From contig OZ176051.1 in the NCBI GenBank assembly GCA_964247055.1, forward strand, positions 7,750,001 to 7,814,000: DNA of 64,000 nucleotides, written 5' to 3'. Position 1 is the stretch's first letter, and each line of letters opens with the position of its first letter. Shown piece by piece: positions 5,225 through 64,000 of the stretch. Both the position numbers and the translations under genes were made by a program. The notes beneath the pieces are model-generated. The model was not told where the DNA came from. It did not search any database and saw only the letters and a program-made list of their open reading frames with translations. This DNA is from Paragordius varius (taxonomy: Eukaryota; Animalia; Nematomorpha).

Positions 5225-5990
5225 ATTCCAATTACCCCTCCTTCACATAAAGGCTATAGTATCCAGTTACCTAAAACGCACAATTACCCAATACAGTAAA
5301 AAGGCAGATATACCAAACAAATGAAATTGTACAGTATTTGCTACAACAAGACTATCAAAAAGAATGGATTACAACAGCAGTAAACAAAATTATAAAAAGA
5401 AACCTGACTTCCATGTCGGCAAATCCGGTTGGTTTTATTCCATGCCAGCCCATCCTTCCCACAGAAGCCTCACGTCAACGGACGAAACTATTCTTCCCTC
5501 TGGAAAAAAACAATCGTGTAATTGCTTGCTTACCCTATAGCGCTACATCAGAAAGTGTCGGGAGAATTTTATAAAAGAAAGATGACATAAAAGTGGTTTA
5601 TAAACCAACATAGAACTTTTTAAAAATGTTAAAGTCTAAGGAATTGGAAATGGAAAACACGATATACAAGTTGAAATGCGAGAATTGCCCAGCAATTTAC
5701 ATAGGCCAGTCGAAGCGAAACATAAAGGTAAGATATAAACATAAAAAAGAAAAAGTTCGGCTATGTTTCTGCATTGCGTGGATAACATCCATGAGTGCTC
5801 AAATAGAATTGACGTTTTAGCCGTGGAAAGAAAGTACATCTCAAGGATAACAAAAGAAGCACTCTTTATACAAAGCGCAGATGGTTTACTTAATCGCCGT
5901 CAAGAAAGGAAAGATATAAACCCTGAAACTAAATCATTTATCAAAAATTATCGAATTTTTAATCACAAACCATTTTACAGTGTTTAAAAT
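5225..5990 (+). pseudogene. Penelope-like retroelement fragment (RT thumb region plus GIY-YIG endonuclease)
   Basis: Frameshifted translation: SNYP...KAIVSSYLKR..., LPYSATSESVGRIL, IYKLKCENCPAIYIGQSKRNIKVRYKH, VLAVERKYISRITKEALFI...LLNR. Confidence 0.8.
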
Positions 5991-6339
5991 AATAATTTTG
6001 TGTTTACATTGTTTCATGTTAAATTATTATTTTATTTACATTAGCGTATGCAGTAAAAGATTGTTAGTGCAAAATAAAATAAAAAACACTTTTTAAAAAA
6101 CAGGGGGATATTATGGATAGTGTATACAAAATTAGGGGACAATCTTGGTATATGTAATATATGCGCATTTGGTTTTTTTAAAACTGCGAAAATTTTTTTT
6201 AAAAATATTAGTGAAACATCATTTCCCAGATATATTATAAAAAAATGTTAAATTAAATTTCATGGTAGAATTATACATTCGTGATTAATTATGGAACTGT
6301 ATAACAAATACAAATTATACAAGATCTTTATTTAAATTA

Positions 6340-7542
6340 CAAGCGTGAATCTCGTGCTGCTACGCAGCCGAGGAAGTCCTTCGGACTTCTGGGGGGGGGC
6401 GGGTGTTCGAAGCTTGGATTTGATTGGGTCTACCTTTTTTCCGGTACATCACAAAGCCAGCATTTTCCATTTTTATAAATATATAGATTACCATAAATAA
6501 TGTTTTAATATCCATATATCTTTTAACATGCTATACATATGATAGATACTCCTTACTCAGCAGCTATCATCAAAGAAACGCTTGACTAAAATTTTTGCCT
6601 TTTAACAGGGAATACGTGGAATCCATATAGAATTTTTACGATCTCATACCTAGGGCGAAAAATCGATTTAAAAAATCATTTTTGTGGACTTTGTTTTTTG
6701 AAAACAATGTCATTTTACGGGGGTAGGGGGTAAAAAGAGGGCCTAAATCAAAAAAGTGACTCGACTATGTTCGGCGCAATCGAAAATAAGTAAACAAAAA
6801 TTATATTTGAAATTGAATGGTCCAACACGTTCTCCAAAAAATTGACTTAACCCATTTTTCACACGGGGTGGGCCTGAACTGGGGACCTAATTCCAAAAAA
6901 GGGCGAAGCTATTGTCGGGGCATTCATTAATGATTATATTTTTTCGATATTTGGATTTGATTGGGTTCACTGGTTTTCCGGAAACAGATCACAAAGTTAT
7001 ATGAAAAATCAGTTTTTAGCGGGTAGCTCCTTACCCAGCAGCTATCATTAAATAAACGGTGGACTAAAATTTTTGCCTTTTAACAGGCAATACGAAAAAT
7101 CTTTCTCGAATTTTTACAGTCTCATACCGTGGGCAAAAAAATACAATCAAAAAAATATTTTTGTGGACTTTGTTTTTTTTTGAAAAAATTGGCATTTTAT
7201 GGGGGTAGCGGGTAAAAAGAGGGCCTAAATCAAAAAAGTGACTCGACTATGTTCAGCGCGATCAAAAATAAGTAAACAATTATATTTTAAATTGAATGGT
7301 CCAACACGTTCTCCAGAAAATTGTCTCAAAGACACGATTTTTGTGGACTTCTATTTTCAAAAAAAACCGTTTTTCATACGGGGTGGGGCCGAACTGGGGG
7401 CCTATTTCAAAAAAAGGGCGAAGCTATTGTCGGGACTTTTATTAATGATTATATTTTTTCGATACTTGGATTTAATTGGGTCTACCGGTTTTCCTGTACC
7501 AGATCACAAAGCCAGCATTTTCCATTTTTATAAATATATAAA
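6340..7542 (-). mobile_element. Non-autonomous Helitron with internal tandem array
   Basis: Element strand ends hairpin GCTGC-GTA-GCAGC then CTTG|T (CTAG variant) and starts T(C>T)TATATA; inserted at A|T with no TSD relative to the empty site near 13500. Confidence 0.8.
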
Positions 7543-7875
7543 TTACTTGCTTTTCTCGATCTATTGAAAACTGAATATGCGTCAGGTGATAAATAAAAGA
7601 ATTTTTGAAATTTGGAGTTTTTTGTAATTAAAAATAAATTACAAAAGTTTACTTGTTAAATGCACTACTTACACAGATTCAGGGAAAGATTTAAACACAA
7701 TGATATTTTAAACAATGATGTTTTCTTGAATGTGCAACAATATTAAAAACCATATATTATAATAATAAATATGTATCTATTTATTAATACTGTTGTGAAA
7801 TAAGTATAAAATTTGAACAATAAATCTAATGCAACATGTTAAATAATATTTGATATATTTCTATGTGTATTTTCA

Positions 7876-8676
7876 TTAAATAAATGTTTTTTCTGTAACG
7901 CAACTTCTGTCAAAATCTTGTGTGTCATGTTTGCCGATTGGGCCCCTTCCAACTTGTCGATATGGCTCTAGATTAAAACCTGTTTCGTCCAGATAAAACG
8001 TCTTTTCCCAAGGCATATCTTTTGCCCTTAAAGCGTATTTGTATCTATCTAAGTATATAAACCAAATACCTTGTTTCTATGGTTGAAAGGGAATTTCTAT
8101 TGATTGGCTTTTTGTATATTCGTTTTATATTGTATTTAATATTTTTTAGTATTTTGGCTAAGGTTGATCTCCCAACTTTAACCTCATCTGGAAGACGGCT
8201 TATTATATCTTCGTATGTGACTTGATAATCTTGATCAATAATTTTTTTAACAATATTTATTAATTTTGGATCATTCCATTTACATTTTGGCCCTCTTTTC
8301 TCCACCGTAAACTCATTATCATTCCTTAGATATCTCAAAAATTTATAAATGTGCTGTTGTTTCAACCCCAATCTAAGGGCTATATCCTTCACTGAGAATT
8401 CGTAAAAATTTGGCTCTGAAAAAATTCGATATGCCTCATTGATTTTTTCAGTGGTCCAAAAGCAATATTCTAAACATTATTAACTGCTAAACTTTTAGAT
8501 TTCTTAATTTTTTTTGTAGTTTTCACAACATTTAATCTTCTTGTAACGTTATCTAAATTGGATATATCCTGTAATACATTTCTAGAAGTATCAATTTGTT
8601 GAATATTTGGTATTGTGGCTTCATTTTCCTCTGAGTATTCATAAACATTTAATAAATTTTTAATAAAAAACATCAT
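7876..8676 (-). CDS. IS630/Tc1-like transposase N-terminal half (HTH region plus first catalytic Asp), spliced model of 250 aa
   Basis: Exons 8676-8493, 8469-8070, 8044-7876; GT-AG gaps 8492-8470 (23 nt) and 8069-8045 (25 nt). The joins give KSKKYCFWTTEK and NSLSTIETRYKYALRAKDMPWEKTFYLDETGFNL. The 3' DDE part is decayed. Confidence 0.65.
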
Positions 8677-10184
8677 ATATATTTCTCACAAAAATTTTAT
8701 AAGCTTTTCAACAACCAAATGTGCCGACCAAATGTCCTTAATTTTCATATTTTGATTATCATTCAGTCTTATTATAAACATATCCATAATATCCCCCTGT
8801 TTTTTTTTAAAAAGTGTTTCTTATTTTATTTTGGACTAACAATCTTTTACTGCATATGCTACTGTATAGCATTACAATTAATTTTTATAAAAAATGCACA
8901 TTTGGTTATTTTATATCACAACGGTTTCTTTGTGATCTCTATTTTATCCACTAATGGTTCTTTTGTGATCTCCTATATAAGTGTTATCAACCATAATTTT
9001 GTTCATTTTTTATAAATTAATTTTTATTATCATATATTGGGTGGGGTGATAAAAAAGTCGCACTTGACTTGTAAGCCAAGCGTGGCAAGTTGAGCAAGAT
9101 TACTTAAGCCGGCAAGTGTACACTTGAAGATCGGCGATAAAAAAACACTTAAATCAAGTCTTTTATGAATGTAACAGTTTTTTGCCACCCAATTCGAATT
9201 TTATGGAAATTTTTTTGATCATTTTCAGCTAAAATCTGTGAAATAAGGCACAAAAAGATAAACAATAAATACGATATGCATTTATTGAAGTTTTTCAAAC
9301 TCACTGGCACCTATCTTATATAATATTATAGAGTTTTCTATTGTGATCCTAGTAATAATTTTTAGATTGATGAAACCATTCGCCCTTAAAATACTTTCCA
9401 TTATTTCACCACACTACTTATTTTGTTTGGAGTCCAGTTGCAAATATAATGGGAAGATGTTTATACATAACATAATTATTTTTAATTGATTATAAACATT
9501 ACATTCGAAATAAATTTATGATGAAATAAATTCTTTACATTGGATAAAAGTGAAGTTTTGCCTTTAATAAACGAAGATAAAATTTTACAAGATTAATATT
9601 TAATTAATTTTAAAAAATTTTTGTGAATTCCAATTTTTTTGCGGTCACGGAAACGATATATTCAGCATATTTTTATGTGCCATGTTATTTAATATTAGCA
9701 GAGTTTTTCTATAAATTTATCCTCTTTTGTATCCACCCAATGAATAGATTAATTGGCCAAAATTTATCAAATTAACAATTTATAGCATTAATAAAGGTTT
9801 GAATTACATATAAAACCTAAATTTTGTATATAATTAGTTTCCAAAATAATTTTATCCATATTTTTGAATCTGTCAAGTGTGCCTTATACCTAAGGTGACC
9901 AGATTTTTTGAAGGAAAAAGCGGGACAAATCTAGAAGGGAGTGGGTCATTGGGGGATACAACCAAAAATTTTTATACAAAAAATTTATTGTAATATTTAT
10001 TTATTTTTAACAAAATACATTATAAATATAAAAAAATTTGTACCTCACAGGTTGTTTGTACCATATTCAATAAATTTCCATGTGCACGAACAAAGGGTGA
10101 AGTTATTTTAATATTCTAGAAAAAAATATTAAAGACAAAATCATCACAAAGTGCGCTGGGTGATGCAAGAAGCGGCACAAAAAT

Positions 10185-10870
10185 ATTTATAATAATTTAG
10201 CGAATAATCTTAATCAAAACATTATTGGCAGATACACAACGTTCAAACAGCTACTGATTTGTTACCCCTGGATGTGGAAAATATAGATGTTAAAATGCTT
10301 GTATATTGTAGAACTGTTGGTTAGCTCTTTTGCCAGCGATTGAAATATTTATAAAAATGTGATCTCCTAGAATCCTATTTTTTATCACAGGACAAAGGTC
10401 AAAATTCCAAGTCAAAAAAGGTTAGAAAATAATTCTATACCATTACCTAATCGCAATATTATAAAACATCCAGAAAAACAAGGCTCAATGAATAGCCAGA
10501 ATATAAAAATGTTTTATACAAACAGAAACGATTATTTGGAAGACAAGACGGTGCACAATGACACTTTTTGATGAAGTCTCATTACTAAATAAATATATTG
10601 AATGAAAACTTATATTATGGACAACAGAAAAAAATACGTAAGATAGAAATGGTTAAAATAATCATTTTTAAACAAATTATGTTCCATACAATATTATTTT
10701 AATTGTAGAATTTGCATTATTTTTACCTGAACCACTGCTATTGAACGCGTTTTTCCACAGTAAATTAAGTAAGGACACGGAATCAAATTTAAATGTTGAA
10801 TAAAAGCCATTTTGTGTGTTCAAATATAATTTGACAAATTATGAAGACTTATACAATATTTTACGTGATT
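10185..10870 (+). pseudogene. Second, more decayed hAT transposase fragment in the opposite orientation
   Basis: 10185-10310 is an inverted match to 11930-12060 (TTCAAACAGCT.CTGATTTGTTACCCCT.GATGT.GAAAAT); 10560-10870 is an inverted match to the dimerization-domain region 10950-11300. Confidence 0.65.
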
Positions 10871-10909
10871 TTGTTTATTTTTTTACACAAAAACTTTAAA
10901 GAAAATATT

Positions 10910-12620
10910 TTATTCTTTGGTATATTTTTTGTTTGAGTGAATGCGTTTTAGCAGATTGTCATCATTTTTTAAAATATTGTAGAAGTCACAAGAATTTGTC
11001 AAATTATATTTGACAGATAAAACGGCCTTTAAAGTAACAACATTTAAATTTGATTTTTCCGATGTCCACACCTGATTTACTGTGGAAAAAACGAGCTCAG
11101 TAGCTGCGTTGGTTCCAGGTAAAGATAGTGCGATTTCCACAATTTTTAAAATATTATTGTATGTAATATAGTTGGCTTCAAAATGATGAAATATTTCCAA
11201 CCATTTCTTTTCTAGTGTATATTTTCTTTTGTCCATAATTTAAGTTTTTCAATATTAATATATCTTTTAACTAATGATACTTCAGAAAAAAGATCATTTT
11301 CTGAAAGATTACCTTTTGATAAATTTTGGGAGCAGATATAATCAAATGATTTTTGAACATCGCACCAATTAAATTCTGATTTAATGTTATCCAATGAAAA
11401 TGATCAATTTCAATGAATTGGGTCGTCCAGTCTTCCAAATAATCTTTACAGTTTGTATAAAACATTTTTAAATGGTACAGGATATCTTGGCGATTTTTTA
11501 AGCCTTGTTTTTCTAAATTATATATTATATTGCGGATGGTTAATAGTATAAAATTATTTTCTAACCGTTCTTGACATTGGAATATTAGGTTACTAACTTC
11601 ATTGGCTACTTCGATTGCCGAAATTTTGTCACCTTCTATAAATTTAATAACATTTTGAAAGAGAGAAGCTTGATTATGTAAGACTAACCATATTTTTGAA
11701 CAATCACTTTCAAAAAACTTTTTTAAAGTTGTAGGACATTTGTCCTGTGATAATAAAAAAGATTTTAAAGGATCATACATTTTTAAAATTCTTTCGATAA
11801 CTGGCATAAAAGCTAACCAACGAGTTTTACAATATCCGAGCATTTTTTGATATTGAACTTCTGCATTTTCACAAAATTCTTTAAGCGTTTTAACACGTAC
11901 CTGTATATATAAAAATAGGAATATATTTAACTACATTTTCTACATCTAGGGGTAACAAATCAGCAGCTGTTTGAATAGCGTTGTGTATTATATGCGCTGC
12001 ACACCCAACGCCAATAATGTATTAATGAAGATTATCTGCTAATTTATGAAAAATATTTTTTGTTCCCCTCCTTGCTTTTCCACCATAGTTCATATTGGTG
12101 TTGTCAGCGCAATATGCGATAATCTTTTAAATTATTTTTTTCTAGAATATGCATTATTGAAGTAAATATTCTTTCGGAATTTTCAACGTGTAGAGATATT
12201 AAATCTAAAATTGTAATTTTTACTCCGGTTTTTGAATCTAAATATCTTATTAAAGTGGGAGATAATTTTGTTTCATGGTGATTGATGTATCAGAGTTTAG
12301 GGATAAAAAATTAATTTTCAGCAAATCTTTTGTATTTCAGAAAATGCATGTGAGGAAAGGACATTGCACACAATAGCTTCAGCCTTTGTACGGGCACATG
12401 TAAATTTTTTATGGAATAACGTGCGAATAAGTGAGGTACAGTCCATAGATCTAAACGAATGATTGTGATTAACAGCGTGAAAACGCCCTCAGCTAGTGCC
12501 AAATTCTTTACTTCTTCTCCAAAAGCGGTTTTTCGAAAAAAAACGCTCATTTTGTAAGATGATGCCGCCATATCTCTAAACATTTTTTATGTTTCTGTGT
12601 TTCCATATGCTTTGTAATAT
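10910..12620 (-). pseudogene. hAT transposase pseudogene (frameshifted)
   Basis: LAEGVFT...HSFRSMDCT, GCAAHIIHNAIQTAADLLPLDV (CxxH), YCKTRWLA (RW motif), LSLPGTNAATELVFSTVNQVWT (hATC dimerization-like). Confidence 0.85.
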
Positions 12621-13319
12621 CATGCTTGCCGCCATGTGCTAGGGTGAATTCCCCCTCGCATATGAGACATTTAACAGATGATTCATTCTTCGTTTTTTAA
12701 ATAAAAGGAAAATCTTTCATTAATTTATCGTTAAATTTACAACCTCTTTTTGTGCTCATATTTATAAACTACTATTAATATATTAAATATTATATTACCT
12801 TAATTTTATGAAATAAACGTGTAAGGTACCGATTTGTGGTATCAATTTGTCTTTTAAGCTACAGATTTATGGTATTAATTTGGCTTTTTAATAAATGTTG
12901 GCAAGTGATAAAACTAAAATATTAGTATAGCAAATATTATAATACCTTAATTTTCTGGAATAAACATGTAAGGTACCGATTTGTGGTATCAATTTGTCTT
13001 TTTATCTAGAGATTTGTGGTATTAACTTGGCCTTTTGAGAATGATGACAGTAGTAGTAGGAAGGAAAGTGTATAATCATATGATATAAATTCGAAAAAAA
13101 TAAATATTAATTTAAAAATAAAAATTTTTTTTTAAAATTTATATAGATATTGAAAATATTTAATGATAAAAAATTTAAACGGATAAAAAAAATTATTTGT
13201 ATTAAAAAATTTTTTTTATATAATCGTGAAAAAGCGGGACATTTTAAAAAAGTAGCGGGACGCGGGACAAAGTGTGAAAAAGTGTGGTCCCGCCAAAAGC
13301 GGGTCGTCTGGTCACCTTA

Positions 13320-14840
13320 CATATGCAGTAAAAGATTGTTAGTGCAAAATAAAATAAAAAACACTTTTTAAAATTAGTGAATCATAATTTTTCAAATATC
13401 TTATAAAAAAAATGTTAAATTTCATGGTAGAATTATACATTCGTGATTTAAATTATGGAACTGCATAATAAACACAAATTATACAAGATCTTTATTTAAA
13501 TTATTACTTGATTTTCTCGATCTATTAAAAACTGAATATGGGTGAGATGAAAAATAAAAGGATTTTAAAAATTTGGAGTTTTTTGTAATTAAAAATAAAT
13601 TACAAAAGTTTACTTGTTAAATGCACTATTTATATTATTTATTATTAAACGACACCTTTTCTTTTACACAGATTCAGGAAAAGATTTTAAACACATTAAC
13701 AATGATGTTTTCTTAAATGTGCAACAATATTAAAAACCATTTGTTATATAATAAATATTTATTAATGTTGTGAAATAAGTATAAAATTTAAACAATAAAT
13801 CTAATGCAACATGTTAAATAATATTTGATATATTTCTATGTGTATTTTCATTAAATAAATGTTTTTTCTGTAACGCAACTTCTGTCAATATCTTGTGTGA
13901 TTTGTTTGCCGATTGGGCCCCTTCCAACTTGTCGATATGGCTTTAGATTAAAACCTGTTTCGTCCAGATAAAACATCTTTTCCCAAGGCATATCTTTTGC
14001 CCTTAAAGCGTATTTGTATCTATCTAAGTATATAAAACAAATACCTTGTTTCTATGGTTGAAAGGGAATTTCTATTGATTGGCTTTTTGTATATTCGTTT
14101 TATATTGTATTTAATATTTTTTAGTATTTTGGCTAAGGTTGATCTCCCAACTTTAACCTCATCTGGAAGACGGCTTATTATATCTTCGTATGTGACTTGA
14201 CAATCTTGATCAATAATTTTTTTAACAATATTTATTAATTTTGGATCATTCCATTTGCATTTTGGCCCTCTTTTCTCCATCGTAAACTCATTATCATTCC
14301 GTAGATATCTCAAAAATTTATAAATGTGCTGTTGTTTCAACCCCAGTCTAAGGGCTATATCCTTCACTGAGAATTCGTAAAAATTTGGCTCAGAAAAAAT
14401 TCGATATGCCTCATTGATTTTTTCAGTGGTCCAAAAGCAATATTCTAAAACATATTAACTGCTAAACTTTTAGATTTCTTAATTTTTTTTGTAGTTTTCA
14501 CAACATTAAATCTTCTAGTAACGTTATCTAAATTGGATATATTCTGTAATACATTTCTAGAAGTATCAATTTGTTGAATATTTGGTATTGTGGCTTCATT
14601 TTCCTCTGAGTATTCATAAACATTTAATAAATTTTCAATAAAAAACATCATATATATTTCACACAAAAATTTTATAAGCTTTCAACAACCAAATGTGCCG
14701 ACCAAATGTCCTCAATTTTCATATTTTGATTATCATTCAATCTTATTATAAACATATCCATAATATCCCCCTGTTTTTTTTAAAAAAAAGTGTTTCTTAT
14801 TTTATTTTGGACTAACAATCTTTTACTGCATATGCTACTG
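13320..14840 (-). mobile_element. IS630/Tc1-type transposon, copy 2 (no Helitron insert, left TIR missing its first bases)
   Basis: Colinear with 6045-8864 minus the Helitron; right end ...TGCATATGCTACTG followed by TA at 14841-14842. Confidence 0.85.
13851..14651 (-). CDS. IS630/Tc1-like transposase N-terminal half, copy 2, spliced model
   Basis: Exons 14651-14468, 14444-14045, 14019-13851; GT-AG gaps 14467-14445 (23 nt) and 14044-14020 (25 nt); exon lengths identical to copy 1 (184/400/169). Confidence 0.65.
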
Positions 14841-15123
14841 TAATTTTTATAAAAAAAATGCACATTTGGTTATTTTATATCACAACGGTTTCTTTGTGAT
14901 CTTTCTTTATTTTGTCCACTAAAGTTTGTGATTTTTTCCTATATAAGAAATATCAACCATGATTTTGTTCATTTTTTTTAAATTAATTTTTATTATCTTA
15001 TATTATATATATTTTTCTTAACTAATCTCCTATTGATGCCTATGGCGAAAATTTGAGAATTAATAAATTATATTTTATTTTTGCGTTATTTTACTACGAT
15101 TTCAACATCATTATTTATGGTAA

Positions 15124-16211
15124 TCTATATATTTATAAAAATTGAAAGTGGTAGCTTTGTGATCTGTTTCCGGAAAACCGATAGACCGATTCAAATCCAA
15201 ACGAAAAAATATAATCATTATTGAATGCCCCGACAATAGCTTCGCGCTTTTTTTCAAATAGGCCCACAGGTCGGGCCCACCCCGTGTGAAAAACAGGTTT
15301 TTTGAAAACAGAAGTCCACAAAAATCGTGTCTTTGAGTCAATATTTCTGAGAAAGTGTTGGACCATTCAATTTCAAATATGATTTTTGTTTAGTTATTTT
15401 CGATTGCGCCGAACATAGTCGTCTCGTTTAAACCCTCTTTTTACCCGCTCCCCTCGTAAAATGCCATTTTTTTCAAAAAAAATAAGTCCACAAAAATTAT
15501 TTTTTTAATCTATTTTTCGCCCAAGGTATGAGACTGTAAAAATTCAATAAGGATTCCAGGTATTCCCTGTTAAAAGGCAAAAGTTTTAGTCAAGCGTTTC
15601 TTTGATGATAGCTGCTGGGTAAGGAGCTACCCGTTAAAAACTCATCCGTCATGTGGCTTTGTGATCTGTTTCAGGAAAACCGGTTGACCCATTCAAATCC
15701 ATATATCGAAAAAATATAATCATTAATGAATGCCCAGACAATAGTTTCGCCCATTTTTTTGAAATAGCCCCCAGGTGTGAAAAACGGGTTTTTTTGAAAA
15801 GAGAAGTCCAAAAAAATCGTGTCTTTGAGACAATTTTCCGGAGAACGTGTTGGACCATTCAATTTCAAATATGATTTTTGTTTACTTTTCGATTGCGCCG
15901 AACATAGTCGGCTCGCTTTTTTAATTTGGGTCCTCTTTTTACCCGCTCCCCCGTAAAATGCCATTTTTTTCAAAAAAAAACAAAATCCACAAAAATAATT
16001 TTTTGAATCTATTTTTCCCACAAGTAAACAATATATTAGTATGAATGCACCGTTTTAAAATTCCTATGAGATGATATTTATTAGATAATGTTACGAAATA
16101 ATCCACATATGTGGATCATTTTATTGTCCCTTTTTTCTAATAGCCCCCCCTCCCCTCCCAGAAGTCCGAACGACTTCCTCAAGCTGCGTAGCAGCACGAG
16201 ATTTACGCTAG
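15124..16211 (+). mobile_element. Non-autonomous Helitron with internal tandem array
   Basis: A|TCTATATATTTATAAAAA at 15124; poly-C, hairpins and CTAG|T at 16208-16212. Confidence 0.8.
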
Positions 16212-19165: not shown

Positions 19166-22100
19166 ATGCACGGACACCGCAAGCATTTTCCGATCGGGAT
19201 TAAATGGTATTTTCAGAAATGTTATGCTAAAAATGAAATCTTGTTTAAGGATAAACATGACCATCTTTACGATTCTGCCGTAGATAAGGAAAATCAACAA
19301 TATAATCCTGATAATGAATCTGAGACCTTAATTCCTATAGAGAATGAAACACGATCTCCGAAATTTACTCCTGTAATTAATAACTTAATACATCATAAAT
19401 TCCCCACATTTATACTACTTTTAACGTTTGTCATATACACGGGGTATCACGCATCTCGGAGACCTATTAGCGTGGTTAAATCGGTTCTGCATCATCCCTC
19501 CAACTGTTCATCATTCGTAACATTATCTCCGTCATCGGATAATCCTACCCCTTATCCATATGCTAACAACAGTTTATGTGTCGATTGGCCACCCTTTGAT
19601 GGCCCAAATTATAATCGATTGTTTGGAGCGCTTGATATGGCTTACTTATTTTCCTATGCTATTGCCATGTTTGTTTCTGGTCATTTGGCTGAACATAGTC
19701 ATTTGCGATATTTCTTAACATTTGGAATGATTCTAAGCGGTTTGTCTACCGTCGTGTTTGGGGCCGGATATTTTTTTAACATACATTCCATATTATTTTA
19801 TTTCGGGATCCAAATTATTGGTACTTCTTATATTAATCAATAATGTCACTTATGATTTTTATGCATAAACTTTTATATTATAATTTCTGATAAATACACT
19901 CGTTATTTTTTTATTAGAATACTTATTTAAACATGGTATTATTATAAAATAAAAATTTATTGTTGTATACTCAACCAAGCTGCCTTTTGTTTAAAATTTT
20001 ATTAATAGGTGGAATATTTCAATCCTCTGGGTGGCCTAGCGTAGTCACTTGCATGGGTTATTGGTTTGGAAAACGGAAAAAGGGGCTTATATTTGGCATT
20101 TGGAATTCACACACTTCCGTTGGAAATATATTAGGTACACTTTTAAAATTTTTGCTCAAAATTTGTACAAATTTCAAATATATCATAATTCAAAAACGCC
20201 AAATTCGCCCTAAATATAAGGCTATATAAAAAAAACAAATATTTTGTTATATTCATTTTATAATGCTTTCTCCTTTGTCTTTTCCAATTTACTTTAATTT
20301 ACTTTTTATATTTAATTTTGAATATGTGCATATGTACAGGTAGCCTTCTTGCATCCATTTGGGTTAATTATGCTTGGGGCTGGTCTTTTGTAGTTCCTGG
20401 TGCTTTACTTATATTACTTAGTGGGGTTGTGTGGATGTTTCTCATCCCTTCGCCCGAAGAATTTGAGGAAGCCCTTGTTATCCATTGTGCCAAAAATCGC
20501 CAAGAACCGAATGATTTTGCCAGAGTGTTGAATGCTGATAATTATGAAAAAAATAAGGATCACACACCTATTATGGAACATGCTGAAATTCCCACCTTGT
20601 TTGCTACGCACAAGAGTTTAAATGGTAATGCCAAACAACATACCTCAAATCGACATCATAGCAACAATGGTATTGCACCAGAAAGCTATATAGCTGAAAC
20701 AGGTAAATATAGGTTTTGTTACACCTCTAAATGTCTGGACTACTTCTTTAAAATATTTTATCTTAATTTATAATAATAGAATAGCAGCTAAATCATACAT
20801 AGTTTTTTCTAGGGTACTAAATTGATTTAAATTCAGTTACTTTGGTTATTTTTATAATTCTAATATTTCGTGTTTTTTGATTTTGATATTTGATAGCTTT
20901 TTGACTTAATATATAACGGTTAACACTTACGATCTTATTCCAAGGTCCTTATCTAGACATTTGGTAATGTTGAGGTTTAGTATTTTTATGATATTTAATT
21001 AATAAATTCTAATTTTTGGCTATTTAGATGGTGATGGATTTGTTAATGAAAGATCGGATTTACTCAGAACAAGGTAATATCATATTTTACCCAGCTTTTA
21101 TTGGGTTTAATATAATAAATTAATAAATCAATAAATCTTTTTGCATTTTATGACGCTGCCATTTTTATTTAATATATTTCAATTTACATATAATACGATT
21201 TTTTTATAGGTCTACCGACAACATTGGTAATCATGCATCTTACGCTGGACCCAGTCACACACCTATGCCTCTTTTAGCTAAAAAACCGATTGGTTATATA
21301 TGATTATAAAGATTTTATTTTGCAATACAAATAATCTAAGTTTTATACTTTAACTAAAGTTTTTTGAACCTGTATTGTATTGTATTGAATATGATTATTA
21401 TTAAATAATTTAATGTGTAGGTATTGGGAATGCCTTACGCGTACCAGGTGTTTTGGAGTTCTCTTGCTGTCTGTTCTTTGCCAAGGCCGTGAGTTATACC
21501 TTTCTGTATTGGTTACCGAATTATATTACGGCCTCCTCTGATTTAGATCCGGCTCAAGCTGCCAAACTTGCGAGCGTTTTTGATTTTGGGGGTATTTTGG
21601 GTGGCATTATTGCAGGTAGGGATGATATAATAACAACTATTATGTTTTTAAATAAATTTATTATATTAAGTTTTGGTCCAAATGAGATAATTTATTTAAA
21701 TATATATATATATATATATATATTGAAATTTTATATACAGTCATGAATCCTTTATTTTATCAAAAATTTATTTCTTGTTAAATGGATATAAATATTTGAT
21801 TAAGAAAGGAAAAAACAAGAGTTCTATGGTAATTCTTATATTTTTTGATAAATATGATACTGTTACATTATAGAGCTCTTGTTTTTCCATTCTTTACCAA
21901 ATATTTACCCATTTAACGAAAAAAAAATAATTTTTTAATAAAATAAAGGATACATGCCTGTATTCCGTTTTTGATTTCACTTGATTACAACAATGGTTTT
22001 TATAATTTCTTATTTTAATAGTGTTGAGATTTAAATTGCCTATCATCACCTTAAATAGTTTTCTTTGACAAATTGGGATTTCATAAATGTTGTAATTTTT

Positions 22101-23097
22101 ACTAAACAAAAAAATTATTTTTATTTTTTGGGTATGCATTTTTATGTTGATTTGTATAGATTTGTGATAAAAATGTGTTTTTACTAAATTTATTTATAAA
22201 TTTAATCATATTTGATTTTGCAATAAAGGTTACATTAGTGACAGAACGGAGGCTAGTGCAACTGTGTGTGCCCTTATGTTGGGATTATCTTGCCCACTAA
22301 TATATTATTATCACATATATGGACATATCGATTTCACAATTAATGTTATCCTCTTATTCATAAGTAAGATATAAAGTTAACAAATAACGGGAATCAGATT
22401 TAGTTTAAAAAATCTTAGTTTTTACAGGATTTTATTAATATAAAAATATAAAGATGAATAATTAAAAAACCATTTTTAAAACTTGATTGATAACTATATG
22501 AAATTGGGTGATATATATTTACATTTCTATACTCTTTATTTCGCAACCCCGAACGAGAGTTTATTTGAAAACGAAACACAAGGTTTTAAATATTTGACTC
22601 TTTTATAAATATATTTGTGGCGTAACTGTTTATGTTTTGTTTTTTATAAAAAAAAATTTTACTAATTATTTAGCGGGTTTATTTGTAAACGGTCCATACG
22701 CCCTTATAACAACGGCCGTTTCAGCTGACTTGGGAAACAAAATTGGAAAGTCTCAACATGCCAAAGCTTTAGCTACGATCACTGCCATTATTGATGGATC
22801 CGGATCTTTGGGTTTATATTGATTATTTTGCATATTAATTTACTACATTTAGATATTTATATCAGACTGTTTTCAAAACTTAGGTCTTTATAAGAAAAAA
22901 ATAATTAATGTATAAATATTATAATTATAGGAGCCGCTTTGGGTCCCCTTATCGCAGGTTTAGTCGCTTCGGATTCTTGGTGGAATGTATTTGCTATGCT
23001 CATAATTTCTGATATTTTTGCCATCATATTTTTAATACGATTATCTTTCCGTGAAATGAAACTAGCTTACCAATTACAAAAGGAACGAATTGTATGA
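19166..23097 (+). CDS. SLC37A2: Sugar phosphate exchanger (MFS, SLC37A1/A2-like), 635 aa
   Basis: Exons 19166-19820, 20009-20134, 20340-20702, 21028-21073, 21210-21292, 21421-21615, 22229-22363, 22674-22811, 22931-23097; all GT-AG, phases consistent, 1908 nt. Motifs YHASRRPISVVKS, QSSGWP, GIWNSHTSVGNILG, VPGVLEFSCCLFFAKAVSYTFLYWLP, NGPYALITTAVSADLG. Confidence 0.92.
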
Positions 23098-32400: not shown

Positions 32401-35400
32401 ATTAATGTTTTCCAATTAATTGGACCTACTAAAGCTGCAAACACTTATGTAGGCGATATTACTTATCCCATAGATAACACTATCCTAAATGAGGGTAGCT
32501 ACACATCAAACGCCACTAAGAAAAGTGATAATCTCTCCGAATTGAAATGTGAGTTTGGGAAAACTTTTGGTTATCGCGATGAAAACATTTGGGTAAGTAA
32601 TGGGTGCCGGGCCATATTTGCTGTGCATTTGCCCTCTGTCTCCATAAAAAATTTTACCGTCAAAGCCAGTATCATGGAAAGATCGGTATATAAACCAATC
32701 TCCGAACACAATGGGATGAACCATTTTGAGGTTTGTCACGAAATTAACAAATATTTTATGAGAATAATTTATAGAAATTGATCTTGAAAGGCTGAAATCC
32801 ACTTTTTCCGAAACATAAGTTGTTAAATAATTTAGCATTTAAACAAATTATCTTTCAGAAAATGAATAAAAGCTTTTCCCGTTTATTCCTGAATACTATA
32901 CAATGTTCCAAATACCTCAAGATCCGGTTCAGTTTTTTTTGCAAAAAAATTAATTCCGCTTATACAAAAATGGTTTAAGTTTTAATTTTTGATTATATAT
33001 ATTTTAATATATAATTATGACACATTTAAAATTATTAATGCAGTTCCAATATTATTTAGTTGATTTGTAAAAGTTTTGGTCAAAGACATCAATGTAGAGC
33101 ACCAGGAAATATCGTTTCAATAACATTGACCGAAGAATTCTCCGTCCTTAAATGTCAGTTCGGTAACTATTAAACAATCATAATTATCTAAAGTTTAATT
33201 CCACCTATAATAAATATAATCAATATATTGCTATTTTAATTTTTGAGGTGAAACATTTGGGCATTACTATGATCAGGTTTGGGTTGATGAAAATTGCCAG
33301 GCCAAATTTATGGTAAATTTTTTGGAAAACAAGCCTTCAGAAAAACCCTATAAAGAATACAAGCATAAAACAAGCGATAATTCACATGCCTATCATGATA
33401 AACCAGAGCCAAGAATTATACAGGGACACGTGGATGTAAAAGAAACTCCAAAGCATTCTTATGTTAAACATTTTTCACCTGAAAGTATAAATTATAAAAT
33501 CATCCTTTAAAATTGTATACATTGCATATCCATGTCACACTTATAAGTTTGTATCTTAGTTTAGAGTTATATTGTGACACTATGGAATTTTTATTTATAT
33601 AATTAACTAGCGTGAATCTCGTGCTGCTATGCAGCCCGAGGAAGTCCTTCGGACTTCTGGGGGGGGGGGGGGTTCGAAGTTTGGATTTGAATGGGTCTAC
33701 CGTTTTTCCTGTAGATCACAAAGCCAGCATTTTCCATTTTTATAAATATATAGATTACCATAAATAATGTTTTAATATCCATATATCTTTTAACATGCTA
33801 TACATATGATAGATACTCCTTACTCAGCAGCCATCATCAAAGAAACGCCTGACTAAAATTTTTGCCTTTTAACAGGCATTACGAAAAATCCTTCTCGAAT
33901 TTTTACAGTCTCATACCTTGGGCAAAAAAATACAATCAAAAAAATATTTTTGTGGACTTTGTTTTTTTTTGAAAAAATAGCATTTTACGGGGGAAGCGGG
34001 TAAAAAGAGGGCCTAAATCAAAAAAGTGACTCGACTATGTTCGGCGCAATCGAGTAAGCAAAAATCATATTTGAAATTGAATGGTCCAACACGTTCTCCG
34101 GAAAATTGTCTCAAAACACGATTTTGTGGACTTTTTTTTTAAAAAAACCCGTTTTTCATACGGGGTGGGCCCGAACTGGGGGCCTCAATACGAAAAATCT
34201 TTCTCGAATTTTTACAGTCTCATACCGTGGGCAAAAAAATACAATCAAAAAAATATTTTTGTGGACTTTGTTTTTTTGAAAAAAATGGCATTTTACGGGG
34301 GGAGCGGGTAAAAAGAGGGCCTAAATCAAAAAAGTGACTCGACTATTTCGGCGCAATCGAAAATAAGTAAACAAAAATCATATTTGAAATTGAATGGTCC
34401 AACACGTTCTCCAAAAAATTGACTTAACCCATTTTTCACACGGGGTGGGCCCGAACTGGGGACCTAATTCTAAAAAAGGGCGAAGCTATTGTCGGGGCAT
34501 TCATTAATGATTAAATTTTTTCGATGTTTGGATTTGAATGGGTTCACCGGTTTTCCGGAAACAGATCACAAAGTTATATGAAAAATCAGTTTTTAGCGGG
34601 TAGCTCCTTACCCAGCAGCTATCATCAAAAAAACGCCTGATTAAAATTTTTGCCTTTTAAGAGGGAATACGTGGAATCCATATTAAATTTTTACGGTCTC
34701 ATACCTAGGGCGAAAAATAGATTTAAAAAATTATTTTTGTGGACTTTGTTTTTTGAAAAAAATGGCATTTTACGGGGGTAGCGGGTAAAAAGAGGGCCTA
34801 AATCAAAAAAGTGACTCGACTATGTTCTGCGCAATCGAAAATAATTAAACAAAAATCATATTTGAAATTGAATGGTCCAACATGTTCTCCGGAAAATTGT
34901 CTCAAAAACACGATTTTGTGGATTTCTGTTTTCAAAAAAAACCCGTTTCTCACACGGGGTGAGCCCGAACTGGGGGCCTATTTCAAAAAAAGGGCGAAGC
35001 TATTGTCGGGACATTTATTAATGATTATATTTTTTCGATATTTGGATTTGATTGGGTCTACCGGTTTTCCTGTACCAGATCACAAAGCCAGCATTTTCCA
35101 TTTTTATAAATATATAGATTATTTATTTTTTATATATTTTTATTTTTAATTGTTATGTTTGCTTAGAGCTTTTGAAAGTATTGGCTTCTGTCACACCTTA
35201 GAAAAAGTTATTGATTATACTCTTAATAATGCAAAAAATGCATTTCAATTTTCGAACATGAAAGATTTGATTAAAATTTTTTGATTCATTTTCATTTTAA
35301 ATAAAATACACAATTTTTAGAAAATTTGTTGACAGCATGTCAACAATCTTTGGAAGTTGGACATTGCCCTTACAATTTAACCAGATATTATTATGATTCA

Positions 35401-60124: not shown

Positions 60125-61082
60125 TCTCTTATTATTGTAGCAAAGATCGTTGTCGATTTATTGCTTTTTCGAAGGTGTATTTTCTCCAGTTTATTCGATT
60201 GTGAGTGAGTGATGTTAACTGTTGTAAAGAGAGTTTGGTTTCTTTGGTTAGGTTTTCAATCCAGCGCATCTTGCAGCGTCCACGTTTCCTGGATCCTTCA
60301 ACCTTGCCTGTCAATAGTTGGAATTCCAAGTCATTAGCTCTGGTAATGTGACCAAAGTAAGATAATTTCATTTTGAGGCACATGCCAATCAAGTGTATCT
60401 CGGGGTTTATTTTTTCAAGGATTACAGTGTTTTTTGCTTTATCATTCCAAGTGATTTGAAGTGCCTTCCGCCAGCACCAGATTTCGAAGGCGTTAATGTA
60501 TTTTTCGTCTGTCTTTTTTATTGTCCAGCTTTCTGATGCATATAGCATGCAAGGAAATATTAGGGCTTTAACTAAACGGATTTTTGTTTTTAGTTTGATG
60601 TCGTGTGATGTCCATACTTTATTATATTTTATCATTTTTGTCTTTGCAATTCCTTTTCTCCTTTTAATGTCTGGGGTGCTGTTGTTCGTTGTATTTATAA
60701 GACTGCCTAGGTAAGTGTATTGGGACACTACTTCTATTTGTTGGTTGTGAAAAGATAAGTTGTTATAATGGTTATGAGCGTTTATAGTCATGATTTTAGT
60801 TTTTTTGAAATTGATCGTCAGTCCAAATTTTTGACATTCGTTTGAGAATTCAGTTAGGAGTTTTTTCAGGTTGTCCACTGAGTTTGACAGCAGTATGGTG
60901 TCATCAGCATAATGGAGTAATGATATAATATTGCCGGCAATGCTTATACCATTAGTTTTATCTATGTTCCGTAATACACTTTCTATGCAGACGTTAAACA
61001 GAAAAGGTGAGAGGACACAACCTTGTCTTAGACCGTTGTTCATTTGTACCCAATTGCTTATGCCATGTGGGGTTTTTATGTT
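60125..61082 (-). mobile_element. RTE-clade LINE, 3' half (reverse transcriptase C-terminal part)
   Basis: GLRQGCVLSPFLFN, LHYADDTILL, YTYLGS, LYASESWT, AFEIWCWRKALQITW, SYFGHITR, GKVEGSRKRGRCKMRW; open for 303 aa. Confidence 0.92.
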
Positions 61083-61089
61083 TAGTAAA

Positions 61090-62844
61090 GAATTGGAATA
61101 AAGAGATTTACGGTAATGATGGAGGTGGGAAAGGCTTAGTATGCCTACCTTCCTGAAGAAGTACCAATTATTTTTGAAGATGTATTTTTTCTCTTTTTTC
61201 GACAGTATTAATGAAAGCCTTTATCCAATGCATTTGACAAGAATTTATCAACCATTTCTCTACTTTTATCTGATCCCCCTACAACTTTACTCTTAAGAAA
61301 ACACAAACTAAAAATTCAATTGTCCACAAAATATCATTTATTATTCAAAATACAACTCATTTTTTTCCCTCATATCCTTCATCATAAACCTATCGATTGC
61401 TAATCACATCCTCCATATTCTCTACATCTAAATTAACTAAATTCAGACAATGACTGTTCCGAAAAAAACTAATTCCTGTGATGTGCCTTTACGCATTGGC
61501 ACGTGGAACTCTCGCGGCACTACCAACGAAATCGAAGTTATCATAAAAGAAATGGTGAAACTCAACATAAGTATATTAGGAATAGCAGAATCCCACATTC
61601 CGTTAAACGGCCACATAGAATATGAAAATCACATCCTATTATACTCAGGTCATGATACTCTTAAACGAAACGGTGTGGCCCTATTAGTAACCAAATCAAT
61701 CGCCAACGCATCCGAAATTCACCACCCACACAGCGATCGCATAATATCACTTCGACTCGTCTCCACAACCAATAACGATATTCCAAATCTATGCCCCTAC
61801 CAACTCTAACAACGAAGAGGACTCCGACCAATTTTACGAGGATCCCAGTTCAGCTATTGAGAAAGTTCCTAAAAAAGACATGATATTTGTTTTGGGCGAC
61901 TTTAACGCGATAGTAGGTAACGATAATACACATCAAATCACTGGTGGGAAAGGATTGGGAAACAAAAACGATAGAGGCGATCGCCTCATAGAATTTTGCA
62001 GTGAACACAAATTATTCATATCAAACTCCTTTTTCCAACAACCTAAGCGAAGGCTATACACATGGATATCACCTTGCAAGAAGCACAGAAACCAAATTGA
62101 CTTTATCTCGGTATTCAAAAATATAAATCTACCTTTATGAACGTAAAAACTTACCCTGGTTCTGACTGCTATTCTGATCATAATCTCCTTGTAGCTAAAC
62201 TAAAAATTAAAACAGTTTTCTCACGCAACCAAAATTTCAGCATAAACCCAAATTAGATTTCTCTGCGATCTCCCCCGAGTGTCCTTTGTTACTTGAAAAC
62301 AGATTTAAAACACTCGAAATAGACGATGACGCTGAAAATCTTTGGAAAACAATACAAAATATCACTAGCACTACAGCCAAAGAATGCATCCCTATCCAAA
62401 AATCCCATCTTAACAAAATTAAGCTATCACAAAAAAGTTTAGATTTGGCGGACAAACGGCGCCAAGCTAAACGCAATAATAATATGGCAGAGTACAAATC
62501 ACTTAACGCAGAGTTCCAAAAAAGCGCTCGGGAAGACAAAAACGATCACTACAATCAGCTGTGCTTAAAACTAGAAAACGCTGCTAAACATAACAACAAC
62601 TACTTTGCTGAAGTAGATCACATTGCTCCACGTAGGTCTAAAATCTACAAAGGCCCAATGAGAAAGGAAGACGGAGATATCATCACAGACAAGAAAAGAC
62701 TGGTGGAACAATGGGAACAATATGTATTAAAACAATACGGCTCCAGTCCAACGAACGCCGATAAAAACAGTAAGATCTATCAACATGACCCACCGATCAT
62801 CAAAGAGGAAGTTGAATGGGCGCTTAACCATTCCCCAAACAACA
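61090..62844 (+). mobile_element. RTE-clade LINE, 5' half (5' UTR, AP endonuclease, linker), frameshifted
   Basis: LRIGTWN, ILGIAE, NGVALLV, SDRIISLRL, YAPT, VLGDFNAIVG, YTWISP, NQIDFI, SDHNLL, IIKEEVEWAL; homology stops at SPNN. Confidence 0.9.
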
Positions 62845-64000
62845 TGCTGAGATTGCGGGATAAAAAAAATTAATATACGCTAAATTTTGATATCAAATCA
62901 AAATATCTTTTAAAAATTGCATGCTTTTTTGAAAATTTAATTTTTAGCTAAATTTTGTTGAAGATTTCATCCTATTTTTAACCATGATGGAAACGGACAA
63001 AAAATATTTTAGATATTATAAATAATGATGCAACATTTCATCACCCCAGAATTTCAATTAACACATTCGTTCGTCTTTATTTTTGTTATATTAATGTTTA
63101 TTTACACATTCACCTCCTTTAATCAAACTAACCTTTAAAACATTTTGAAGTGATAGAAATCAGCATTATATAATTACCGGCACTTTTGTGTTTATTTTAA
63201 AAGGAATAGTTCATTAAGAAGAGCAAAAAATTTAGGACATTCTGAGTCTTCTGCTAAAAATTAAAATTTGGTGAAAATATTGTTTTGCTTTTTATATGTA
63301 GTCTCTATTTTAGTGATATTTTTTGGAATGAAGCATCTAGCTGGTACCAAAATAATTTTATTTTAAAAAAGTATGTGCAAATTTTGCCATTACCATAAAA
63401 ATGTAAATAATTTTCTTAAATCGTAAGAGACATTAGTTTATGTTTAAAATTATAATCAGAATACAAGTTCTCAAAAAACTTTGAAGAAAAGGGCATAAGT
63501 AGTGGCGAGAATGCCTAAAAACTATTTATTAAATATCGTGATTCCTAAAAAGAATTTCAAAAAGTTCGCTAAAATATCGCATTCATATTCATTATAAAGG
63601 TTAAAAGATCCCAAGCAATATTAACAACTTCCCATTTATATTTTATTTATGTTAAACAGCGTACCATATATAATTGTTCAAACAACTCTTCCTAAAATAA
63701 TCTCAATTTTCATTTTAACTCGTTGAAAGCTCATTGTAAAAATTATTTATTCTAATTATTTAAATAGTTTTGTAATAATTGAAATATCTGTCGCCAAGAT
63801 TCAAATATATTTGATTCAAATCATTGAAATCTATTCAGCTTATTTCTATCGAGTTTCTTATTTTAATACTTATGTAAAATATTAATCACGGCAATTTTGG
63901 CATGCTTCTGCAGCTAGTCTATGGCGAAAATTGCATTTTTAGTAATTTATAGTAAAAGCGATTAGATAGTGTATTCGTTAAGATATAGGTGTAAGTTTTT

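Follow-up and report, generated by a model that had tools for sequence, protein, structure and literature searches.

Two probable introns of 23 and 25 nucleotides in a shortened Tc1-type transposon of a hairworm

Introduction

The transposase genes of the Drosophila P element and of the C. elegans elements Tc1 and Tc3 carry ordinary spliceosomal introns. Like these genes, and like that of a metagenomic relative described below (L004), the transposase-derived gene reported here would need the host spliceosome for its protein to be made; the introns of those elements are about 38–190 nt long, compared with 23 and 25 nt here. Tiny introns of about 25 nt are characteristic of ciliates such as Paramecium, which the segments described here resemble in size, in having lengths that are not multiples of three and in containing in-frame stops that would end translation if they were retained. 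Unlike in ciliates, the host is an animal with the standard code, and TAG and TAA are stops in these frames.

Among 51 animal genomes, introns shorter than 30 nt were found only in myxobolid myxozoans (median 22–27 bp) and in Dicyema japonicum, in a survey of ultra-short introns that does not mention hairworms (PMC13644364). The segments that we describe share with the myxobolid and Dicyema introns their GT-AG ends, their length below 30 nt and their occurrence in a parasitic animal lineage, and differ from them in lying inside a mobile element (PMC13644364). Both transposase introns and ultra-short introns are known already; the segments described here are very probably introns under 30 nt in a hairworm transposon.

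The element itself shares with DDE_3 transposons of the Tc1/mariner (IS630-Tc1-mariner) group the TA duplication, inverted repeats that start with CAGT, a paired-like two-part DNA-binding domain and the YLDETGF motif. As with internally deleted Tc1/mariner derivatives, its shorter deletion forms are the more abundant ones. Unlike Tc1/mariner elements, it has lost the catalytic domain after the first Asp, and it carries a 61-residue N-terminal extension and two putative introns of less than 30 nt.

Organisation of the element

We analysed a stretch of 64,000 nucleotides from the hairworm Paragordius varius, referred to below as the window. It contains two copies of the element, and the first has the following layout.

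6039–8864, minus strand: copy 1 of the Tc1-type element, 2826 bp, with TA at 6037–6038 and 8865–8866
8781–8864, minus strand: terminal inverted repeat on the 5′ side of the gene, about 84 nt, starting CAGTAGCATATGCAGT
6039–6119, plus strand: terminal inverted repeat of the other end, about 81 nt
6400–7546, no strand assigned: array of tandem units of about 500 bp each, an insertion in copy 1 that copy 2 does not have
8493–8676, minus strand: exon 1, starting with ATG, 61 codons and one further nucleotide, encoding an N-terminal extension with the basic cluster KKIKKSK at its end
8470–8492, minus strand: putative micro-intron 1, 23 nt, GT..AG, phase 1
8070–8469, minus strand: exon 2, a paired-like two-part helix-turn-helix DNA-binding domain with no in-frame ATG
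8045–8069, minus strand: putative micro-intron 2, 25 nt, GT..AG, in phase 2, where it interrupts the codon AG|A of the invariant Arg
7876–8044, minus strand: exon 3, which opens the DDE_3 catalytic domain (YLDETGFNL, with the first Asp alone) and continues into an unrelated tail that ends in TAA

A preliminary description of this DNA had assigned the gene to the IS630/Tc1-like transposases. The TA duplication, the inverted ends, the paired-like domain and the YLDETGF motif bear this out, with the qualification that the catalytic triad is incomplete. The two inverted ends of copy 1 (81 and 84 nt) are about 94% alike and begin CAKTAGC.TATGCAGT. The predicted model of exon 2 (mean pLDDT 81.7) consists of two three-helix bundles joined by a KRGPK linker, and in fold comparison it comes closest to Pax paired domains, the Tc3 DNA-binding domain, SETMAR and Mos1, each at a weak E-value. 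Of the catalytic triad the first Asp (YLDETGFNL) alone is present, similarity to relatives stops about 20 residues past it, and no remnant of the remainder of the catalytic domain was found inside the element. Judged by its sequence, the element is a non-autonomous deletion derivative of a Tc1-type transposon.

The gene is broken into three minus-strand reading frames. Frame 1 opens at the ATG at 8676 and closes at a TAG (8472–8470), frame 2 is open from 8476 to a TAG at 8047–8045, and frame 3 from 8076 to a TAA at 7878–7876. Once 8492–8470 and 8069–8045 are excised, the pieces 8676–8493, 8469–8070 and 8044–7876 form a single frame of 250 codons (61 codons, a split Lys codon, 132 codons, a split Arg codon and 55 codons). 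The preliminary description had made the same join, and direct reading agrees with it throughout: removal of 23 and 25 nt yields the 250-residue frame, the premature in-frame TAG of each segment provides its 3′ AG, neither length is a multiple of three, and the motifs that it quoted at the two joins are indeed created. Both segments have GT..AG ends in both copies, and within a range of 15–40 nt each junction has a single GT..AG solution. Both segments are rich in T, with 9 of 23 nt in the first and 12 of 25 in the second.

The 25-nt segment

The exons were searched and aligned as separate pieces, unjoined. Pfam gave weak helix-turn-helix matches for exon 2 and a weak match to the start of DDE_3 for exon 3. 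A word-index protein search with exon 2 returned no matches, and an exhaustive search of 1.84 billion representative proteins returned 13 distant relatives that are 26–38% identical to it; three of them (P0003, P0005 and P0009) are DDE_3 transposases of 288–344 residues. In an alignment of nine relatives into which the two exons were fitted as fragments, exactly one column was left between the end of exon 2 (...NRNSLSTIET) and the start of exon 3 (YKYALRA). Likewise, hhalign placed residues 2–131 of exon 2 on positions 8–132 of a profile of DDE_3 transposase N-termini (99.4%), and profile comparison placed residues 2–41 of exon 3 on positions 136–175 (89.8%).

In the numbering of P0003, the last residue of exon 2 is 133 and the first of exon 3 is 135. 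Position 134 is an Arg, which occupies one of the four invariant columns of the alignment, and its codon, AG|A, is the one that the 25-nt segment splits. With the segment removed, RNS and LDETGF stand 24 residues apart, as they do in P0003, P0005 and P0010, and tblastn switches frame at the same place as the segment. Given that the exons abut on the relatives and that removal of the segment recreates the invariant Arg and the 24-residue spacing, the 25 nt are extra sequence inside a conserved codon rather than coding sequence that has been shifted out of frame. Residues of relatives aligning to the segment, which the preliminary description had named as an observation that would speak against an intron, did not occur, the relatives having one residue between exons 2 and 3. 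Taken together, these results strongly support the interpretation of the 25-nt segment as an intron.

Two relatives have ORFs that end near the same site. In P0008/L003 this is a nonsense-plus-frameshift copy and in P0007/L005 a 1-nt frameshift; both are decayed copies, and neither case is an intron.

The 23-nt segment

Relatives start just 6–8 residues ahead of the CFWTTEK motif and hence cannot place exon 1. The frame of exon 2 is closed just upstream by a TAA (8479–8477), and exon 2 needs exon 1 because it contains no in-frame ATG of its own. Exon 1 lies in a 71-codon open frame directly upstream of exon 2; at the stop-codon frequency of this genome an open frame of at least 64 codons has a probability of about 0.009. 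The join sets the basic cluster before the CFWTTEK motif, where P0003, P0005 and P0006 carry Arg or Lys, and similar acidic-then-basic N-terminal extensions are found in P0006 and L004. The 23-nt segment is therefore a probable intron, less secure than the 25-nt one.

A ribosome that changed frame could, in principle, read the gene with no splicing at all, as happens in some bacterial IS elements. The frame relations fit a shift of −1 at junction 1 and of +1 at junction 2, and exon 1 contains a run of eight A. However, a shift at the A run would end at the TAA (8479–8477) in the frame of exon 2, which leaves just about 5 nt and no slippery motif, and a +1 shift at junction 2 would lengthen the protein by about 8 residues, at odds with the 24-residue spacing of the relatives. 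We rejected ribosomal frameshifting on these two grounds, the block to the first shift and the broken spacing at the second, and regard it as barely credible. A further idea, that exon 1 is a duplicate of exon 2, was dropped for want of any similarity between them.

Upstream of exon 1, a 33-codon ORF that begins inside the inverted repeat (8686–8787, minus strand) shares its frame with exon 1. Copy 1 has only a TGA (8688–8686) between the two; copy 2 has TGT in place of the TGA, but lacks one nucleotide upstream of it. It is possible that the ancestral ORF began within the inverted repeat.

The second copy and preservation of the frame

Copy 2 lies nearby on the same strand.

13320–14840, minus strand: copy 2 of the element, a compact form of about 1.5 kb, one inverted end of which lacks the outer 7 nt
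14445–14467, minus strand: micro-intron 1 (putative) of copy 2, 23 nt, 3 bases different, length the same
14020–14044, minus strand: micro-intron 2 (putative) of copy 2, 25 nt, 1 base different

As had been stated in the preliminary description, copy 2 keeps the lengths and the GT/AG ends despite changed bases in both segments. The three differences in intron 1 are adjacent and can also be read as one base lost and one gained, with the length kept. The agreement of the copies is weak evidence of conservation, since they are about 97.5% identical across the whole ORF and share the sequence beyond the inverted end as well. The two may stem from one duplication rather than from two insertions, and this possibility weakens any argument from selection (97% alike, shared flank).

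Across the ORF and introns, copy 1 and copy 2 differ by 20 substitutions and no indel in 798 columns, compared with about 7 indel events in 577 columns of the flanks inside the element. The contigs of three public runs have 0, 0 and 6 gaps over the ORF stretch. Between the copies, exon 2 has 4 synonymous and 2 non-synonymous differences (pN/pS 0.12, binomial p about 0.016, a test on six substitutions only that was chosen after the data had been seen), and the corresponding counts are 1 and 3 for exon 1 and 0 and 6 for exon 3. With due regard to the small numbers, frame preservation points to a translated DNA-binding domain, and translation of this domain would require the removal of intron 1.

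How far GT and AG count as evidence depends on how the question is put. About 120 cuts of 20–30 nt would restore the frame at junction 1 and 162 at junction 2, and the product of the GT and AG frequencies in the window is 0.0017, so that the chance of finding GT..AG among any of the frame-restoring joins is about 0.2 and 0.27, respectively. The GT/AG ends alone therefore do not carry the case for introns, the weight of which comes from the relatives. For an insertion of fixed position, GT and AG ends are expected by chance with a probability of about 0.002.

These figures bear directly on the possibility that the gene is dead, a decaying pseudogene with ancestral insertions of 23 and 25 bp whose GT/AG ends arose by chance. 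The element is already non-autonomous, the chance of a 20–30 nt GT..AG is about 0.2–0.27 per junction if any frame-restoring join is allowed, and in a crude scan of the window, segments of 18–34 nt that would join long open frames were no more frequent with GT..AG ends than with control dinucleotides. Furthermore, the segments are common to all copies seen, as simple descent predicts, and none of the RNA runs among the public runs searched contains the element. Against decay, the relatives fix the 25 nt as an exact insertion in the invariant Arg codon, for which the smaller chance of about 0.002 applies; the only two lesions in 250 codons would both be of this rare kind; and the ORF has no other indels, compared with about seven in the flanks. 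On balance we consider a dead gene unlikely. A different origin, in which the segments are copies of a short mobile sequence, was rejected, the window holding no other matches to either segment.

Public sequencing reads

The unspliced DNA form recurs in independent contigs, from three public runs that belong to two studies, and is thus not an assembly error. A 624-nt contig spans 7875–8498 gap-free and represents this unspliced form. In the runs that bear the element, coding and non-coding parts are covered alike, as expected of DNA, and the runs that we guessed to be RNA yielded no element sequence. No spliced form was among the joints listed, which cover a 6-kb stretch with a very high-copy neighbour in which a rare form could be hidden.

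One of the element-bearing runs (X5) comes from a second, closely related organism, in which the element is thus also found. A 337-nt contig of this run matches 8356–8047 at 98% and then continues with 27 letters unlike the window, the match ending 2 nt short of the 3′ end of intron 2. In runs X1 and X5, contigs skip from 7850 to 8533, with three different letters in between. This joint represents a shorter derivative without the whole ORF, and its summed depth is above that of the ORF-bearing form; the end regions of the element are far more abundant than even this derivative.

Host genes and introns among relatives

The GC content of the window is 27–28%, and the base composition of the element is like that of the window. 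The genome of another hairworm, Gordionus montsenyensis, has a GC content of 26.93%, in agreement with the window, and consists to 63.8% of repeats, mostly DNA transposons. Introns are not discussed in the hairworm genome papers that we consulted. The one well-conserved host gene of the window, which is SLC37-like (19166–23094), contains no micro-intron; all of its introns are about 100 nt or more, and the other host ORFs are too poorly conserved for an intron comparison. The earlier remark that the mapped host genes of the window lack tiny introns thus agrees with the SLC37-like gene. A candidate 22-nt intron in a hAT element (11879–11900) was rejected, the frame reading through as ...LKEFCE, like hAT transposases.

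The contig of the closest full-length relative, P0003, is 1203 nt long, has perfect 30-nt inverted ends and contains a single uninterrupted ORF, so that this relative is intronless in DNA. A second informative relative, L004 (JGI 3300049218 contig, 17–1527), is a complete, GC-rich, metagenomic Tc1-type element with perfect 64-nt inverted ends, the transposase of which is read from three frames joined via two 38-nt GT..AG segments. One of these lies in the first helix-turn-helix (...IIDNY|IRGKSE). The other (GTGAGT...CAG) interrupts the Glu codon of RRKE|YA; it has the phase of intron 2, whose site lies 6 nt upstream of it. Since one relative is intronless and another has 38-nt introns, the introns of this transposase clade appear, from these sequences, to take a size typical of the host.

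The preliminary description had offered a horizontal arrival of the element, introns included, from a tiny-intron eukaryote such as a ciliate, a microsporidian or a dicyemid. Tc1-type elements do move between species, the segment sizes fit these lineages, and the host genes of the window show no micro-intron. The proposal found no support among the closest relatives, which are 30–38% identical, one being intronless and one having 38-nt introns. Moreover, the 1.84 billion representative proteins contain no close relative, 38% being the highest identity, the base composition of the element resembles that of the host window, and the closely related organism of run X5 has the element too. We therefore regard imported introns as very unlikely. 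Of the earlier micro-intron proposal, the two introns themselves are supported, by exon-wise comparison with relatives, and the horizontal import is not.

The existence of intronless relatives, together with an intron of a relative only 6 nt away, would fit a gain after entry: the micro-introns may have arisen in a young transposon once it was in the lineage, with the spliced, DNA-binding-only product selectively kept as a regulator of the family. We put this forward tentatively, as a possibility that we would not favour over its negation. If it is true, hairworm transposons document introns that were born recently, or that have shrunk to an extreme, at the smallest size that the animal spliceosome can handle.

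A further relative, L002 (JGI 3300031231 contig, 679–1197), encodes 172 residues that comprise an acidic/basic N-terminal extension and the DNA-binding domain alone. The gene next to it encodes a Ras-like GTPase, and L002 may have been domesticated or shortened.

Expression and significance

The anatomy of the element, the fit of the exon 2/exon 3 junction to relatives and the preserved frame are directly observed. We consider the two segments to be very probably real micro-introns of a shortened Tc1-type transposon, and give a probability of roughly three in four to the full reading that they are genuine GT-AG spliceosomal introns in a young, multi-copy Tc1-type (DDE_3) transposon that is a deletion derivative.

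From the layout of the gene we infer expression, splicing and any role of the shortened protein as follows. Transcription would start near the inverted repeat at 8781–8864. Unspliced RNA would yield a peptide of 68 residues only, owing to the in-frame TAG and to lengths that are not multiples of three, whereas spliced RNA would yield 250 residues, with the basic-cluster extension, the paired-like domain and a catalytic stub. The paired-like domain is predicted to bind the inverted ends of the element. An internal deletion has taken the rest of the catalytic domain, so that the element cannot move itself and depends on a full-length relative; the shortened protein might act, for example, as a DNA-binding competitor or regulator. 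Gating of transposase expression by splicing, which the preliminary description had put forward as a possibility and which in the P element works through tissue-specific intron retention that limits the active protein, is ruled out for this particular copy, the product being without a catalytic domain.

If the segments are introns, the hairworm would be the third animal lineage with introns below 30 nt, in addition to the two of the survey (PMC13644364). A young multi-copy transposon would offer many near-identical natural replicates of one tiny intron, with which to ask about the minimum length of an animal intron, the origin of introns and the adoption of the host's intron style by mobile elements. 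Annotation based on ORFs would label such transposase genes as broken though they are possibly intact, and the activity of mobile elements in such genomes may be underestimated.

Other repeats in the window

The region between the two copies (8900–13300) belongs to an extremely abundant repeat family, with summed contig depths in the public runs of 10^5 to 7x10^5 compared with about 4x10^2 for the ORF of the Tc1-type element. A hAT dimerisation domain marks a decayed hAT-type transposase in this region (minus-strand ORFs, 12583–10910). Arrays of about 500-bp units occur at 6400–7546 (in copy 1), at 15109–16021 (inverted, beside copy 2) and at 34811–35149, the last in the region of a DUF3011/Kunitz gene; the units carry the repeated ORF-like sequence MTRLCSA.SK...NGPTRSPENCLKD... 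Reverse-transcriptase and endonuclease ORFs on both strands at 60132–62873 represent a LINE-type retroelement, and a further retroelement-like fragment lies at 5338–5987.
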